Source: Mantamonas sphyraenae STR306 (lineage: Eukaryota; Protista; CRuMs). From it: a stretch of DNA of 64,000 bases. Within the stretch, counting starts at the first letter, position 1. Each line of letters opens with the position of its first letter. The position numbers and the translations under genes were made by a program. Shown in pieces: positions 41,529 to 48,758 of the stretch. The notes below the pieces were generated by a model. That model saw nothing but the letters and a program-made list of their open reading frames with translations, ran no database searches and had not been told where the DNA came from. The stretch covers positions 248,001-312,000 of the forward strand of contig JAPMXV010000003.1 of NCBI GenBank assembly GCA_026936335.1. Reading direction: 5' to 3'.

Positions 41529-42508
41529 TTATGCCTTGACGGCGTACTTGCGGGGCTGGAAGTGCTGCTGCACCTTGCGCTGCTTCAGGGTCATGCGCGA
41601 GGCCTCAAACGGGTTGAGGCGGCGGCGGATGGCGCGGGTCTTCTTGGAGCGCAGCTGCTTGGGCACGTACTTCTTGCCCAGGTTGTAGCCACGCAGGTTG
41701 TTCAGCTTGTTGCTGTTGATCACAGTGAGCAGACGAGCAACATCCTTGCGCAGAACGGGACTGTGGGACACGCAGGCAGGGCAACGGCGCAGTATGAGCG
41801 TCAGCAGAGTGCGTGGGTTGCGTGTGCCAAGAGGCATTTCCAGCCCACACCAAAAACGGAATCACAAAACGGGGCCTCACACACGCCCATGGCCTTGTGC
41901 AGAGCATTGGACGCGTGTGTACCCTTGCCACACATGCGCACCATGCAAACTTACAGACGGGACATCTTGCTGGCAGAGCCACCAGTGACCTTGGCCCTCT
42001 TGTGGGCGGCAAGCTCCTTCTTGTACTCCTTCAGCATCTGCATCAGGTCGGTCTTGCTCTTCAGGCGCAGTTCATAACACTTAAGCTTGGCTGTGGGGTG
42101 TGCATGTGTGTCAGCCACCTGCTGCTCGCCGTCTCATCGCCTCTCGTCGTCTCCTTCCCCTGCTGCGTGCGACGCAACCTGCACCTGGGCCTCGCATGCG
42201 AAAAAAAAACCGCATGCGCTCAGCCACACACAGGCCCCTCACACCTCGCCACGGCACCGACACCTCATGCACGGGTGTGCATATGCTGTACAAGCCACCG
42301 TGGCGTGGCCGAGTGCACACGTTCCATTCTGTGCGGCTCTGTGTGGCGCAGGAGGGCCAGGAAACCGTGGTCGATTGGCAGGGGTCTCCAGGCCGTGGCC
42401 CTGGCACAGACGACACAGACATGGACACGGCGTACGCACGCGTGCAATGGATTCTGTGTGTGACCCAATGTGCATCTGTGTGGGGTGGGGATTGTATCAC
42501 GTACTCAT
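41529..42508 (-). CDS. RPL35: 60S ribosomal protein L35 (uL29); introns 42091-42504 and 41761-41954
   Basis: ATG A|CC gives MTKLKCYELRLKSK..AKVTGGSASKMSRL|PVLRKDVARLLTVIN..PKQLRSKKTRAIRRRL..PRKYAVKA. Confidence 0.95.
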
Positions 42509-42712
42509 TGTGACGGGGTGGTTCGGCTGGGCAGGCAGGCGCAGGCAGAACGGTCCCCGATTTGAGATGGGTCGCAATTGCATGCACATGCGCATCGTTG
42601 TTCCGTGCGATGGCGTCCATGGTGGCATGTTGGGGCATATGTGGCATCCGAGTCGATGGGGGGTTGGCACAGGCAATGCGCAGGGAGATGCAAGTCAAAG
42701 TGCGACCACGAA

Positions 42713-43579
42713 ATGTTCACTCGCTCCGTTAGCAAAAACACAGTGGGACCCATGGTGGCCCATGCACGCATGATGAGCACCACAAGCTCGGCCAATGGCA
42801 TTATGGGCCATGACAAGCTGAAGGAGGTGTTGAATGGGCTGGGTTGGAAGGTGGACGTGGTGTCGTCAGCAACCCTCGCCAACGCGGACGACACGAAACT
42901 CTCCGAAACGGGGTTGACCTCCGCCCAGCTTAAATTGGACCTTGTGGACACAACCGCCAACGGCCTCCTCAAGTGTGTCGATGGACGCCCCGCAGTGAGT
43001 GACTCCACGGCTGGTCCGGGTCCCAAGCTGCTGGGCGGAGTGTTTGCGCTGGCGTCGATGCGCGGTGTCACCGAGCTCGACGGCCTGGGGGCCGTGGTCG
43101 AAGAGATCCTGGCCAAAGGATACACGCCTTCGGTGCACTACGATGAAGTGGGCTTCAAGGCGGCCGAAGAACACAAGGGCCACACGCATCATCTCAACTG
43201 CGGCTGCGGCTTCTGGGACCAGCTGTGGACGGCAGGGAGGCTGCCCGACGTCAAGCCACCGGCGTACACGTTTGAGGAGGCCAAGGAGGTGGTGATCAAT
43301 GCAGGCGGTGTGGTGGAGACCATGCTGGGCAGGCTGGTGCCGCGAGCAGTGGTGATCAACTACGTGCCAAACACCACCATCGATGCCAGCGTCCATGTCC
43401 CTCTGGACGGTGACTATGAGGACCCCAACAACGGTCCCTTCCAACGCTTCGTCAGTGACGTGTGGGCCATCGAGCAGTTTGGCTTGGATGATTCCTACCT
43501 CACCGCCTCCGCCGTCACCGCTGCCCAGCTGTGGCCCATCAAGACCGAGAAACCCAGTGCCGTGATCATTGTGGAATGA
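42713..43579 (+). CDS. Zeta-class (CDCA1/cadmium-type) carbonic anhydrase, single repeat, with a probable mitochondrial presequence
   Basis: LKCVDGR, GPKLLGGVFALASMRGVTELDGL, KGYTPSVH, GCGF, NAGGVVE, QRFVSDVWAIEQFGLD follow the diatom CDCA1 repeat (LKCVDGR..GPKMPGGIYAIAHNRGVTTLEGL..KGHVPSVH..GCGF..NAGGVIE..QRFIVDGWAAGKFGLD). Confidence 0.88.
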   Translation: MFTRSVSKNTVGPMVAHARMMSTTSSANGIMGHDKLKEVLNGLGWKVDVVSSATLANADDTKLSETGLTSAQLKLDLVDTTANGLLKCVDGRPAVSDSTAGPGPKLLGGVFALASMRGVTELDGLGAVVEEILAKGYTPSVHYDEVGFKAAEEHKGHTHHLNCGCGFWDQLWTAGRLPDVKPPAYTFEEAKEVVINAGGVVETMLGRLVPRAVVINYVPNTTIDASVHVPLDGDYEDPNNGPFQRFVSDVWAIEQFGLDDSYLTASAVTAAQLWPIKTEKPSAVIIVE

Positions 43580-43649: not shown

Positions 43650-44902
43650 ATGTTTGTGCGTCAACGAACAGCCAGGCTTGCGCACCGCCTCCAGGTGACG
43701 ACTGTGGGCAGCATGGTGGCACGTCACACGCGTCACATGCTCCACGGTGGTGGTTTTGGTGCCACTGGCAGCCATGGCATGCAATACAGTGTGGCATCCT
43801 CCACACAGAGGACCCGGAACCAGGCCTTGGTGACAAGTGCTGTGAGGCAGCACGTCTCTCCACTTGTGACGGGCAACAGCCAGACCACACATGGCATTGT
43901 CACACGTGTGGGCCATGTCCATGCACGTGGTGTCACCACAAACTCAATCAGTAACGCTACGGTGCGTCCGGAGACCAAATATCGCAGTCCCGTCACTCTT
44001 TCCACCCCCCCTTGCTCACACACCACACACACACATGCCCATCCACTCACTGCAGCGCAACTGGGCACCGTGGGCAGCCTTGGCCACGTTTGTGGGCGTG
44101 GGTTACGTCGTACGCGAACAGTATCTGGAATTCAAGGATGGTGAGTGTGCGGGTGTGTGCGGGTGGATGCGGAAAGATCACCGAACTGGGGCTGACACGC
44201 AACACACACCCGCAGCGGTGATGACCAAGAACCAGGGAGATGTGTTGTCTGTGGGAAAGGCGTCCATTGGAGGACCGTTTACTCTGGTGGACCAGGATGG
44301 CAACACGGTGACGGAGAAAGATGTGCGTGAGGAAGCAGCTTCCGAACCCAATCCACACACCACACAGCCACGCTGACACACCCTGGGCCACCCTTTTCCA
44401 TGCACAGTTCCGTGGCAAGTTTATGCTGATCTACTTTGGATTCACCCACTGTCCGGACGTGTGTCCCACGGAGCTGGAGAAGATGCACGATGCCCTGAAG
44501 GCCCTGGAGAAGCTGCCCGAGGTGCGAGCACGCATCCAGCCCGTGTTTGTGTCTGTGGACCACAAGAGAGACACCCCAGCGGTGATCAAGGAGTACATCA
44601 AGGAGTTTGGCATCGAGGACATTGTGAGTCTCACCGGGTCGCCCGAACAGATCGAACAGGTCACCAAGGCCTACCGTGTGTTCTTCTCCCGTTCCGACGA
44701 TGGCAACGAAGAGAGCGAAGACTACCTGATCGACCACAGCATCTTCACCTACCTCATGGGTCCCGATGGATCCTTCAAACACATCTTTGGTGTCAACATG
44801 GAAGCAGAGGCCATGGCTGCCACCATCACCCAGTCGGTCCTTGTCGACTTGCATGCAAATGCCTCCAATGGCTCCAACCCAGCCAAGGATGACGATGAAT
44901 AG
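43650..44902 (+). CDS. SCO1: SCO1/SCO2 mitochondrial copper chaperone for cytochrome c oxidase; 4 exons
   Basis: Arg/Ser/Thr-rich presequence, one TM helix, IGGPFTLVDQDG, YFGFTHCPDVCPTEL, DYLIDHSIFTYLMGPDG. Confidence 0.95.
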
Positions 44903-44951
44903 CAGCAGCAGATGGCAATGACCCTTGCATTTCCCCCTCAAACTCCCCTCT

Positions 44952-45569
44952 TCACAGTTCCTCTGTGCCCTCTTCCCACTCAAAGGCCCCCTTCTTGACC
45001 TGTTGCTTCTCCAGCAGATCCAACAGCTCCTCTGGGTCATCCGACACCACGTACAGCTCCGTGTGCTCGTCGCGAAGGAACCCGGCCTTGTTTGCGTTTT
45101 CAATCATGGCCAGCAGAGGGTCCCAATACCCATTGACGTTGTACAATCCAATGGGAGACGTGTGGATGCCAATTTGAGCCCATGTGATGCTCTCCAGAAG
45201 CTCCTCCATGGTGCCAAAGCCGCCGGGCACAGCGATGAAGGCGTCCGCCTTGTCGCACATGAGCTTCTTGCGCTCGTGCATGGTGGCCACCACGATTTCG
45301 TCACCCACCACATCCTTCATGACCCAGTCTTGCGTCATTGCCTTGGGGATGATGCCCAGTACCTTGGCCCCTCCGGCGTCTACGGCACGTGCCAGTTTGC
45401 CCATCAGACCAATGCCTCCGCCGCCGTACACCAGACCGATGCCCCGTTTGGCCATGGCCGTGCCCAGGGCCTCTGTCTTTTCAGCAAACACGTCGTCCTT
45501 GGGTGTGGAGGATCCCAGGTAGACGCAAATGTTGCTGATGTTGTTGGTGGTGCTTTCGCTCTCGCTCAT
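44952..45569 (-). CDS. LOG-family nucleotide/cytokinin riboside 5'-monophosphate phosphoribohydrolase
   Basis: ICVYLGSS, LVYGGGGIGLMG, MHERKKLM, PGGFGTMEELLE, QIGIH..PIGLYNVNGYWDPL. Confidence 0.92.
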   Translation of the reverse strand: MSESESTTNNISNICVYLGSSTPKDDVFAEKTEALGTAMAKRGIGLVYGGGGIGLMGKLARAVDAGGAKVLGIIPKAMTQDWVMKDVVGDEIVVATMHERKKLMCDKADAFIAVPGGFGTMEELLESITWAQIGIHTSPIGLYNVNGYWDPLLAMIENANKAGFLRDEHTELYVVSDDPEELLDLLEKQQVKKGAFEWEEGTEEL

Positions 45570-45644
45570 ACTTGTTTCAGGTGTATGCGCAGGCGTGTCC
45601 AACACACACTCTCGTCACAGACAGAGACTTCACTGGTGTGGGAC

Positions 45645-48600
45645 ATGGCAGACTCACCATCACCACCCCCACCCGAGTATGGCAGTGTAGTTGCAGAAGC
45701 CATGGACACTCAGCAGGAGGAGCAGCAGCAACAAACGTCGCCTGCCAATGACGACGACAAGGCCCCGGCCCAGCAGCCACAGGGTACACCGGCAGACGGC
45801 AATGAGCAAGTGGGAAAGGGAAAGGATGTGGACGACAAGGAGACAGGAAGCACAGGGAAGGAGGGGGGAATGGACAAGGAGGAGGAGAGGCAGAAGGGAA
45901 ACGCAAACGAGGAGACCCAAGTTGAGCCAATGATGTTGGGAGGCCAGGGAACAAGCAGTAGCGAAGGAGAGGCCAGGGATGACGCAGATTCGGATGTAGG
46001 GAAGGGGAAAGGGTCATCCGAGGGTCGTGGAAGGGAGGAGGGAAAGGCACGGGACGATGAGGAGGGCAAAGGCGATGGTCGGCCGTTACAGGAATCGGAG
46101 AGCGAAAGCAACGATGCCTCAACGACCACAAAGGAAGGCCGGGAGGAGGATGCAAAGAAGACTGTCGCACGCAAGGTGGATACAGAGGACGCGGAGAAGA
46201 ATGCAGTTGTGGATGAAGTGACTGTGGATGAACAGGAGGAGGAACGGAATGCCGAAGTGGCAAAGGCACGAGCGGTGGCCAAGGAGGCAGGAGCAACCAC
46301 GGAGGAAGGCGATGAACAGGAACAGGATGCACAGGCAAGTGCAAAGGACAAGGCACAGGTTGCTGGGGGGTCAAAGGCATCCACGGTTCAGGAGGAGGAA
46401 GGCAGCAGCAACGGCAAGGAGGACATTATTGGCACGAACGACGACGGAGAGGAACACAAGGTGGAAGAGGAAGAAAGAGAGGGACGGGAGGGGGATGAGC
46501 CTCATTCACCATGGAAGGTACCCACGGCTGAGGGAGCAGAGGCTGAGGATGAGGAGGAGGAGGAGTATGTGGACGAGGACTTTGACATGGATGACAACCA
46601 ACAGCAGGGACAGGGATACGAGGAGAAGGAGGAGGAGGAGGAAGAGGAGTATGAGAACGATGACTACGAGGATGATGAGCTGGACCACATGATGGATGGC
46701 AATGAGGGCGAGGACGACAGAGACGAGGAAAGGTCACAACCCATGCTGGATGCCATTACCATGGACGACGGGAGCGAGGAGGAGGATGCGATCGATGACA
46801 TGGATGATGACATGGATGATGATAGGGATGCGTTGGATGAAGATGGGGATGGGAAGGAGGAGGCGCCAGCGCGTACGGTGTCGGCACCGTCCGACTCTGC
46901 GTACTCCTTCCTGGCGGTGAGTGCGAACCAGAGCCAGCAGTTTGTCCATGAGCACCGCAAGTCCATCAAGGCAGGGACGACGACGACGGCGGCGGAGGAT
47001 GTGGCTGGACTGTGGAGGAAGAATCAGGAGTTTGCCACGAATGCGTTGAATGGGGCCAACATGGACGAGATGATCCGCAGCGACAACGTGAACGACATGG
47101 ATCCGCAGAACGTGTTTGAACAGACCGGACAACACACACAGCCCATGGCAGGCATACGATCACGCCCGGATCTCAGTGTGGAATTGCCCCTTGCACGACA
47201 CAGCACGCTGCACGCAGACATCCGTCAGTTGGACGATGGTCACAGTGCTTACTCGGGAGAAGCCGAATCGCCTGCACCCAACGTGATGCTGGACTTTTCG
47301 TCACCAGCTGCACGGGGTCAGGGTGTCCTGATGGACGACGATGACGACGACGACGACGACGATGAGATGGTCATGATGATGGGCATGCCACATGATGGCA
47401 GGCATGGTGATGTGGTGGTGGTTGAAGAGGGGGAAGAGGACAGGGACGGAGGCATTGCCATCACAACCACCACCACCACCTCCACCACCCAGGGCAAATC
47501 CAGGACGAAGCACAAACTACGGGGCAGCAACAAACAGTCGCCTGGGTATGGAAGCACAGGGGGCGGAGGAGGAGGGTACGCACAGATGCACGGGGGCGTG
47601 GAGCAACAGCAGAGCCGACGCAGCCGAACCAAGTTGCGTCCAGCGGCACAGGCACAGGGCCACGTGACACCCATGAGTGAATCGGGACACAGCAACGATT
47701 TGCTTAGCAGCGACGACAAGACACGTGCGTCACGCAACATCCACTCGTCGCTGAGCCCTGCGAAACTGCGACGCAGCAACGAAGTGCCTCCGCTGCGGCT
47801 GGAAACACGGTCGCCGGCTGGGCGCGCGTCGCCTGCAGGCAGCTACAGCAGCAGTGTGGCATCTACCGCAAAGGGACAGCGACGCAAGAGCAAACTGACG
47901 CTTGCCAAGGATCGACGCAAGTCCAAGGGGGCTGACGATGGCCGTGACGACGACGATGAAAGCGTGATCGAGATGCCGCGTCGTCGATCGAGCAAACTGA
48001 CGGCACAGCAGCCGCAGGGACAGCAAGGACAGCAGGGACAGCAGGGACACACAAGTGGAGGTGGAGGCAAGGTGCGTGTGCAGCAAACACGCGATGGCAA
48101 CACGACGGTGCGTGTGGGCAACGAAGAGATGGCACTGATGGCGTTGTACCTTCCCCGGCAGCAACCAGACAGCACACAGCCATGGATTGTGGCCATGAAG
48201 CCCGTGTCGACGGACATGATGGAACAGCTGCAACCGAGATACCTGCCACCGCTCATCAATGGATCCGAAGTGCACATGCACAGTCAACAACAGCAAAGCA
48301 GCCCGCAGCAACAACAACAGGGCAACAACAAACGAGTGCCTGCATACATGCAACCGACACGTGCGAGTGAACAACGACACGGAGACGTGGAGGAGAAGCG
48401 AAGGAAGAAGAGGAGGGCTCAGCAACGGGCAAAGTCGCAGCAAAAGACAGGCGGCAACACCAACAGCATCCACAACAGCAACAGCAAACACCGGAGTGCA
48501 CCCAAGCGTCACTCACTGGCAAGCAGCAGTCCAGCAAGGGGCAGTGGGGGCAGCAGTCCTGCTTCGGGGATGGGATTCATGCAGAAGAGCGAGGAGGCAC

Positions 48601-48758
48601 GTGCTCAGATTGCACAGGAGTACGCACGCAGGGCCCAAGAGTTGGGAGTGGCAGGCAGTGGACGACGACAGAGCACTTTGTCCCTTCACAGTCGAGGCAG
48701 CGCAAGTGCAGGTGTCATGGGGGCTCGCACGCGTGTGGGTGCGTATGGAAAGCATTAG
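45645..48758 (+). CDS. Large low-complexity, intrinsically disordered protein (acidic N-half, basic/Ser/Gln-rich C-half); unknown function
   Basis: Stop-free ~1037-codon frame from ATG 45645 with purine-rich codon usage typical of neighbouring genes; no recognisable domain. Confidence 0.7.
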   Translation: MADSPSPPPPEYGSVVAEAMDTQQEEQQQQTSPANDDDKAPAQQPQGTPADGNEQVGKGKDVDDKETGSTGKEGGMDKEEERQKGNANEETQVEPMMLGGQGTSSSEGEARDDADSDVGKGKGSSEGRGREEGKARDDEEGKGDGRPLQESESESNDASTTTKEGREEDAKKTVARKVDTEDAEKNAVVDEVTVDEQEEERNAEVAKARAVAKEAGATTEEGDEQEQDAQASAKDKAQVAGGSKASTVQEEEGSSNGKEDIIGTNDDGEEHKVEEEEREGREGDEPHSPWKVPTAEGAEAEDEEEEEYVDEDFDMDDNQQQGQGYEEKEEEEEEEYENDDYEDDELDHMMDGNEGEDDRDEERSQPMLDAITMDDGSEEEDAIDDMDDDMDDDRDALDEDGDGKEEAPARTVSAPSDSAYSFLAVSANQSQQFVHEHRKSIKAGTTTTAAEDVAGLWRKNQEFATNALNGANMDEMIRSDNVNDMDPQNVFEQTGQHTQPMAGIRSRPDLSVELPLARHSTLHADIRQLDDGHSAYSGEAESPAPNVMLDFSSPAARGQGVLMDDDDDDDDDDEMVMMMGMPHDGRHGDVVVVEEGEEDRDGGIAITTTTTTSTTQGKSRTKHKLRGSNKQSPGYGSTGGGGGGYAQMHGGVEQQQSRRSRTKLRPAAQAQGHVTPMSESGHSNDLLSSDDKTRASRNIHSSLSPAKLRRSNEVPPLRLETRSPAGRASPAGSYSSSVASTAKGQRRKSKLTLAKDRRKSKGADDGRDDDDESVIEMPRRRSSKLTAQQPQGQQGQQGQQGHTSGGGGKVRVQQTRDGNTTVRVGNEEMALMALYLPRQQPDSTQPWIVAMKPVSTDMMEQLQPRYLPPLINGSEVHMHSQQQQSSPQQQQQGNNKRVPAYMQPTRASEQRHGDVEEKRRKKRRAQQRAKSQQKTGGNTNSIHNSNSKHRSAPKRHSLASSSPARGSGGSSPASGMGFMQKSEEARAQIAQEYARRAQELGVAGSGRRQSTLSLHSRGSASAGVMGARTRVGAYGKH

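Follow-up and report, generated by a model that had tools for sequence, protein, structure and literature searches.

What might a zeta-class carbonic anhydrase (CA), an enzyme otherwise associated with diatoms, do in a protist that does not photosynthesize? The question is raised by a gene on the plus strand of a 64-kb window of the Mantamonas sphyraenae genome (the window being the whole stretch of DNA analyzed, positions 248001-312000 of contig C3, internal to the contig and ~59% GC). Mantamonads, gliding flagellates that live in the sea and belong to the supergroup CRuMs, have no plastid. The gene product, called paralogue 1 here, is a single-domain zeta-class (CDCA-type) CA and not a beta-CA, its active site is intact, and its gene is an intact resident nuclear gene of this heterotrophic flagellate. 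Reviews confine zeta-CA to diatoms (PMC7215798 Table 1; PMC4413181) and tie it to carbon acquisition and the marine cadmium cycle (PMC7215798; PMC4413181), and surveys place it in few diatoms only (PMC5853954). What is new is thus the host, in which this known enzyme class was not expected, along with some structural peculiarities of the protein. We consider the explanation as a whole, a resident single-domain zeta-CA with a housekeeping role and an origin that leans toward bacteria, to be quite probable.

Family, fold and active site

The stop-free translation of the open reading frame (ORF) at 42713-43579 on the plus strand is 288 amino acids long. The domain is colinear with its bacterial homologues from their start methionine through the C-terminus, and the coding region is therefore without an intron.

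42713..43579, plus strand: zeta-CA paralogue 1, complete coding sequence of 288 codons and a stop, intron-free
42803..43576, plus strand: CDCA catalytic domain, residues 31-288, from Pfam PF18484, the AlphaFold model and Foldseek

The Pfam CDCA family (PF18484) matched residues 77-272 with an E-value of 3.4e-31 and 108.7 bits, where the gathering threshold is 29.2 bits, and the match covered profile positions 1-172 of 184. At E-values up to 1 the Pfam search of paralogue 1 found no family besides CDCA and no Pro_CA (PF00484). The three repeats of CDCA1 from Thalassiosira weissflogii were the sole solved structures in the PDB with sequence similarity (E 1.3e-28 to 2e-25). An AlphaFold model built from a 33-sequence alignment reached a predicted local distance difference test (pLDDT) score of 86.4 and a predicted template modeling (pTM) score of 0.85, replacing an earlier run on a 3-sequence alignment that gave a pLDDT of 68. 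When the model was compared with the PDB by Foldseek, the top six matches were CDCA1 repeat structures (E ~1e-19, template modeling (TM) scores by target of 0.87-0.89); beyond the CDCA1 repeats there was no match with an E-value below 0.3 and no beta-CA among the matches. A beta-CA identity is ruled out, since sequence, profile and fold all match CDCA1 only. The ESM Atlas feature search returned weak leads only, which pointed to CA families of a beta-like type and to one bacterial cluster of CDCA, and the shape search of the same resource gave no match above a TM score of 0.32. One result counts against the explanation as a whole: an exact-sequence look-up of both Mantamonas paralogues, and of a longer version from an upstream ATG, found none of them in a collection of 15 billion sequences.

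Pfam found one CDCA domain in paralogue 1, and the three tandem catalytic repeats of the diatom CDCA1-type architecture are absent. The protein is in the zeta class, yet it is not an orthologue of CDCA1. A sequence-only reading of the locus had proposed a zeta-class enzyme with a single complete CDCA-like repeat and with the motifs CVDGR, PSVH and GCGF as its ligand sites. The class and the single domain were borne out, and all three motifs are present and align with the ligands of CDCA1.

In the CO2-bound structure of CDCA1-R3 the metal ligands are Cys473, His525 and Cys535; Asp475 and Gly536 partner the metal-bound water, an Asp/Arg dyad is present, and the CO2 pocket is formed by Val474, Phe537, Phe603, Thr627 and Leu631 (PMC8217695). 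We mapped the active site of paralogue 1 by hand, from printed alignments, onto these residues.

42974..42988, plus strand: C88-V89-D90-G91-R92, the first metal ligand, the CO2-pocket Val and the Asp/Arg dyad, aligned to CVDGR of CDCA1
43136..43138, plus strand: His142 of the PSVH motif, second metal ligand, by alignment to CDCA1
43205..43213, plus strand: C165-G166-F167, the third metal ligand, water-binding Gly and CO2-pocket Phe, by alignment to CDCA1

Across the 33-sequence alignment D90 and R92 are invariant and C88 is near-invariant. The CO2 pocket maps to V89, F167, F246, T269 and L273, the equivalents of the CDCA1-R3 pocket residues. By homology, the enzyme would bind one Zn2+ through Cys88, His142 and Cys165, possibly exchangeable with Cd2+ or Co2+. 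With the Asp90/Arg92 dyad and Gly166 orienting it, a hydroxide on the metal would then attack CO2 held in the Val89/Phe167/Phe246/Thr269/Leu273 pocket to yield HCO3- and H+.

All mapped ligand, dyad, glycine and pocket residues are kept in paralogue 1 and in a second Mantamonas copy, paralogue 2, a 311-residue protein encoded on contig C73 (G000:C73:217572-218159 region; L002:1321-2253, minus strand) that matches Pfam CDCA with an E-value of 2.8e-29. Unlike paralogue 1, it has no N-terminal extension, carries a predicted tail anchor and keeps the family motif G-x-H-x-E-K. Its C-terminus holds a hydrophobic segment of the tail-anchor type (mean Kyte-Doolittle value of 1.7 over 19 residues) followed by an acidic tail. 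Two ENA metagenome proteins of a diatom-like clade described below, P0009 and P0053, also end in a hydrophobic segment and then a Lys-rich tail; tail-anchored zeta-CAs would therefore recur outside Mantamonas.

Start codon and targeting

Where the enzyme works in the cell depends on which ATG is used, and thus on the status of the residues that precede the catalytic domain.

42713..42802, plus strand: N-terminal extension, residues 1-30, candidate mitochondrial presequence by composition; the start may instead be Met31 (42803)

The extension is acid-free, as the sequence-only reading had noted, with 0 Asp or Glu, 3 Arg or Lys, 1 His and 9 Ser or Thr in residues 1-30, and it has no hydrophobic signal-peptide core. 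AlphaFold places a low-confidence helix at residues 11-22, and a possible cleavage site ahead of Ser22 has Arg at its -3 position. In alignments, neither paralogue 2 nor any bacterial homologue has the extension. Given this composition in a plastid-free host, a mitochondrial presequence is the simplest reading; with a start at the first ATG, the 30-residue extension would direct paralogue 1 to the mitochondrial matrix. We regard mitochondrial targeting, as suggested by this presequence-like extension, as an even proposition. Three features pull against it: the extension has only a modest amphipathic moment (0.39), Met31 falls exactly at the bacterial start methionine in alignments and is flanked by A at -3 and G at +4, and a further in-frame ATG, in poor context, lies upstream at 42656.

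The same enzyme could instead be cytosolic, a possibility to which we give appreciable, though lesser, credence. Translation would then begin at Met31, the upstream 90 nt would be 5' untranslated region (UTR), and the cell would hold a cytosolic zeta-CA and a tail-anchored membrane one, leaving the mitochondrion with gamma-CAs only. The good Kozak context of Met31 and its match to the bacterial start agree with such an arrangement, as do the weak hydrophobic moment, the lower GC content at third codon positions (GC3) in the extension than in the domain (0.67 against 0.78) and the fact that complex-I gamma-CAs already supply mitochondrial CA. The ATG at 42713, however, also has A at -3 and its frame is open, and the extension, acid-free over 30 residues, Ser/Thr-rich, basic and with its predicted helix, has the classic composition of a presequence. 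Its GC3 still exceeds that of the non-coding flanks (~0.5), and its opening resembles the N-terminus of the host's candidate complex-I gamma-CA, read from an unconfirmed in-frame methionine, in which Met-Phe-x-Arg is likewise followed by a Ser/Thr-rich stretch. Other host presequences were unusable as comparators: the genes for citrate synthase, malate dehydrogenase and carboxyltransferases either seem to encode cytosolic proteins or have the N-terminal part of their coding sequence in exons farther upstream. Of the earlier proposal that the enzyme is probably mitochondrial, the presequence-like composition stands, while the alignment of Met31 with the bacterial start, in an equally good Kozak context, takes away the 'probably'.

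The spacer between the upstream ribosomal protein gene and the zeta-CA gene (42120-42712, ~590 bp) holds, besides the in-frame ATG at 42656, an out-of-frame ATG at 42676. Given a long 5' UTR, these could be upstream ORFs.

Relatives and origin

Few members of the family are known. When 1.84 billion cluster representatives were searched exhaustively with HMMER, 47 matched at E <= 0.001, 20 of them at E <= 1e-10, with identities to paralogue 1 of at most ~51%. A word-based homologue search returned a single bacterial relative, and scans of genome contigs and metagenome contigs with Mantamonas-specific motifs returned no relatives. One further candidate from the search, P0015 (5140 aa), was rejected: its 15 short matches all fall on query residues 228-277, which include an acidic/Pro-rich insertion, it has no match to the family hidden Markov model, and it is most likely a low-complexity artefact.

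Context look-ups placed the bacterial relatives in typical bacterial gene neighborhoods. Named carriers are Plesiocystis pacifica SIR-1 and metagenome-assembled genomes (MAGs) of a Polyangiaceae, a Deltaproteobacteria and a Planctomycetota member; the family occurs in 8 of 401 genomes sampled from the phylum of Plesiocystis and, for Planctomycetota, in 1 of 401. A second group of relatives lies on eukaryote-like contigs, and one of its members scores 266 bits to CDCA1; the group was therefore treated as the diatom clade. On one diatom-like contig of 75.7 kb (L008, JGI 3300046168), three adjacent CDCA genes of 445, 375 and 96 aa stand beside a deoxyhypusine synthase gene and a DUF1995 gene. The trio has the look of either a local cluster of zeta-CA genes or a single multi-repeat gene that was wrongly split.

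Two insertions in the Mantamonas domain bear on its relationships.

42881..42937, plus strand: insertion 1, residues ~57-75, common to paralogue 2 and bacterial P0013 only, by alignment
43394..43435, plus strand: insertion 3, residues ~228-241, acidic/Pro-rich, common to paralogue 2 only and of low pLDDT

The paralogues are 45-47% identical and share both insertions. In a tree of 44 domains (LG+C20, with the columns of insertion 1 left out) they are sisters with support of 100/98, and the pair stands outside a 95/80 clade in which the diatom clade is nested among the sequences of every sampled bacterial genome. We read the pair as the product of a duplication within the mantamonad lineage. A constrained clade of Mantamonas and P0013 was 4.0 log-likelihood units (lnL) better than the free search, and outside Mantamonas P0013 alone has an insertion where insertion 1 lies. 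The contig that encodes it (L004) carries genes for a lipobox lipoprotein, PpiC, a BamB-like protein and a GDPD protein at bacterial gene density. We slightly favor bacteria over diatoms as the source of the ancestral gene, and we lean toward a bacterial acquisition independent of that in diatoms.

This preference has to be set against the approximately unbiased (AU) test, in which neither a clade of Mantamonas with the diatom clade (a cost of 15.3 lnL, p 0.17) nor one of Mantamonas with the main bacterial set (p 0.13) was rejected, and against the long branches of both Mantamonas and P0013. The gene could have come from a diatom or other alga, as prey or as an old endosymbiont, or vertically from an early eukaryote, so that it would share one eukaryotic origin with diatom CDCA. 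We think such an origin unlikely. Besides the AU result, it can call on the possibility that long branches draw Mantamonas toward the base, and on the occurrence of tail-anchored single-domain forms in the diatom-like clade too (P0009). The free tree, however, sets Mantamonas outside the 95/80 clade and the diatoms among bacteria, and the one-eukaryote constraint bears the likelihood cost given above. In comparison with CDCA1, Mantamonas reaches 103 bits and bacterial P0003 reaches 226, the sole other carrier of insertion 1 is bacterial, and no other non-algal eukaryote was recognized among the matches with examined contigs, in a family of 47 representatives in 1.84 billion. The sequence-only reading had offered horizontal transfer or a wider ancient distribution. 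The phylogeny keeps both: it sets Mantamonas outside the diatom clade and finds it best placed with a bacterial sequence, and it leaves a single eukaryotic clade unrejected.

Departures from the family, genomic residence and role

Besides the two insertions, paralogue 1 departs from its family at a conserved motif and in a loop.

43328..43345, plus strand: G206-R-L208-V-P210-R, the changed family motif G-x-H-x-E-K, with near-invariant columns at 208 (His) and 210 (Glu)
43139..43204, plus strand: His-rich loop from the His ligand to the second Cys ligand, residues 143-164, by alignment

The motif G-x-H-x-E-K, which lies ahead of the VxIN strand, is kept in >90% of the 33 sequences; in paralogue 1 Leu208 and Pro210 replace the near-invariant His and Glu, both of which paralogue 2 keeps. 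The His-rich loop exceeds its counterparts elsewhere in the family by ~13 residues, contains 4 His and an extra Cys, and is modeled with a pLDDT of ~51-73. The departures (the motif loss, the loop and the two insertions) spare every residue with a described catalytic role. Even so, and to the detriment of the reading as an active CA, the loss of G-x-H-x-E-K or the long His-rich loop that interrupts the ligand spacing could change activity. The protein might then keep the zeta-CA fold with a main function other than CA, as a CS2/COS hydrolase, a metal-binding or sensing protein, or a catalytically impaired copy. CDCA1 also hydrolyses CS2 (PMC8217695), and the exchange of His208 and Glu210 in one paralogue only and the His/Cys-rich insert adjoining the metal site would fit a changed function. 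Against this, all crystallographically shown metal-, water- and CO2-binding residues are intact. The ORF, too, has stayed whole and kept the codon usage of the host through the long divergence from paralogue 2, a sign of purifying selection acting on the catalytic core. We therefore hold a loss of CA function to be rather improbable.

The gene resides in a host assembly of 25,061,354 bases in 78 contigs, in agreement with the published FALCON assembly of M. sphyraenae (25.06 Mb, 78 primary contigs, 59.19% GC; PMC10492846). Its GC3 is 0.77, and its relative synonymous codon usage (RSCU) correlates with that of pooled host genes at r 0.85, within the range of individual host genes (0.80-0.95). 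Two intron-bearing genes flank it.

41532..42118, minus strand: uL29/RPL35, divergent upstream neighbor; Pfam Ribosomal_L29 matches both coding pieces, 41532-41837 and 41954-42118, with an intron between
44321..44899, plus strand: main exon of SCO1, downstream neighbor; Pfam SCO1-SenC E 6.8e-41, the match beginning at profile position 16

Since the SCO1 match begins at profile position 16, the start of that domain sits in an upstream exon. Bacterial contamination or an assembly artefact foreign to Mantamonas is exceedingly improbable: it is true that the nearest relatives of paralogue 1 come from bacteria and that the culture was xenic, >60% of its raw long-read data having been recognized as contaminant and removed (PMC10492846), but the gene lies ~43 kb into a 64-kb window internal to C3, between the intron-containing uL29 and SCO1, has host-like GC3 and RSCU, is at most ~51% identical to any bacterial sequence, and has a diverged paralogue on another eukaryotic contig. 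An intronless gene between intron-bearing RPL35 and SCO1, with contamination unlikely and a host that is neither a diatom nor photosynthetic, is also what had been read from the sequence at the outset, and each of these points holds with Mantamonas sphyraenae as the host. A photosynthetic stramenopile host, which would have told against that reading, is thereby excluded.

Farther downstream, a gene of the LOG or 'possible lysine decarboxylase' family (44955-45605, minus strand, Pfam E 2.5e-40) converges on SCO1, tail to tail. The plus strand has at 44925-48758 a very long open frame for a low-complexity product that is extremely acidic and then basic; the frame overlaps the opposite-strand LOG gene at its 5' end, and its true start is therefore further in.

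Mantamonads are a bacteria-feeding group (PMC10492846), and because the host is non-photosynthetic the enzyme cannot be part of a carbon-concentrating mechanism. We evaluated what other CAs the host might have. A six-frame family search of the whole assembly found no beta-CA (PF00484), alpha-CA (PF00194) or iota-CA (PF08332), with positive controls detected in reference genomes. Because none of these was found, the two zeta-CAs appear to be the only free CAs of the cell. That statement is weakened by two points: six-frame searches for delta- and theta-CA in the assembly also found none, with controls that were silent, and searches of this kind work exon by exon, so that intron-fragmented genes could be missed. 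Three genes are of the gamma-CA type, one at L029 and a pair ~750 bp apart on C44 (L028, L030); the hexapeptide-repeat genes of the assembly include a clear complex-I gamma-CA (E 1e-58 to a plant mitochondrial gamma-CA). Users of bicarbonate include three stand-alone carboxyltransferase genes of the propionyl-/methylcrotonyl-CoA carboxylase type and an acetyl-CoA carboxylase; the domain specific to pyruvate carboxylase was not found in the exon-by-exon search of the assembly.

In such a cell paralogue 1 may equilibrate respiratory CO2 with bicarbonate that feeds carboxylases. The likely uses would be the supply of bicarbonate to biotin carboxylases and to carbamoyl-phosphate synthesis, the removal of respiratory CO2 and pH control, jobs that normally fall to beta- or alpha-CAs, of which the searches of the assembly found none. 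As a tentative proposal, for which we would claim less than even odds, Mantamonas may have replaced the alpha- and beta-CAs usual in heterotrophic eukaryotes with two bacterium-derived zeta-CAs, one imported into the matrix and one tail-anchored in a membrane.

If true, the 'diatom cadmium enzyme' class would here be seen for the first time in housekeeping bicarbonate and pH work outside photosynthesis. The zeta class would then be an ordinary though rare general-purpose CA, and its diatom role secondary. An intact, duplicated zeta-CA in a deep-branching heterotroph seemingly without alpha- and beta-CAs uncouples the class from photosynthesis, and the very small family gains a probable bacterium-to-protist transfer or a much wider old distribution. 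The Mantamonas enzyme also offers biochemistry a simple single-domain eukaryotic zeta-CA with a natural His-rich loop by the metal site, and it raises the question of where carboxylases in CRuMs mitochondria obtain their bicarbonate.

Among the known systems for comparison are the beta-CAs (Pro_CA, PF00484), the usual mitochondrial or cytosolic CAs of fungi and many protists. They share the Cys-His-Cys and Asp/Arg dyad chemistry and probably the same housekeeping role with the Mantamonas protein, which in contrast has no sequence or Foldseek match to them and comes from a genome in which the six-frame search found no beta-CA gene. One CDCA repeat is known to mimic a beta-CA dimer (PMC4413181). 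The bacterial CDCA homologues (P0003, P0001 and P0013) resemble the Mantamonas enzyme in being single-domain proteins of ~205-250 aa, with P0003 up to 51% identical and P0013 sharing insertion 1 and giving the best likelihood as sister. They differ in having no N-terminal extension, no insertion 3 and no long His-rich loop, and they are uncharacterized and sparse. Relative to CDCA1 of Thalassiosira weissflogii (PDB 3BOB, 3BOH, 3UK8, 7BEZ), Mantamonas has one domain in place of three tandem repeats, with ~32% identity in the structural alignment; it carries three insertions (~57-75, the His-rich 143-164 and ~228-241) and no G-x-H-x-E-K, and it has a heterotrophic host and a candidate mitochondrial presequence where CDCA1 has diatom targeting. 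The two nevertheless have in common the Pfam family, the fold (TM 0.87-0.89), the Cys-His-Cys site, the Asp/Arg dyad, the water-binding Gly and five identical CO2-pocket residues.

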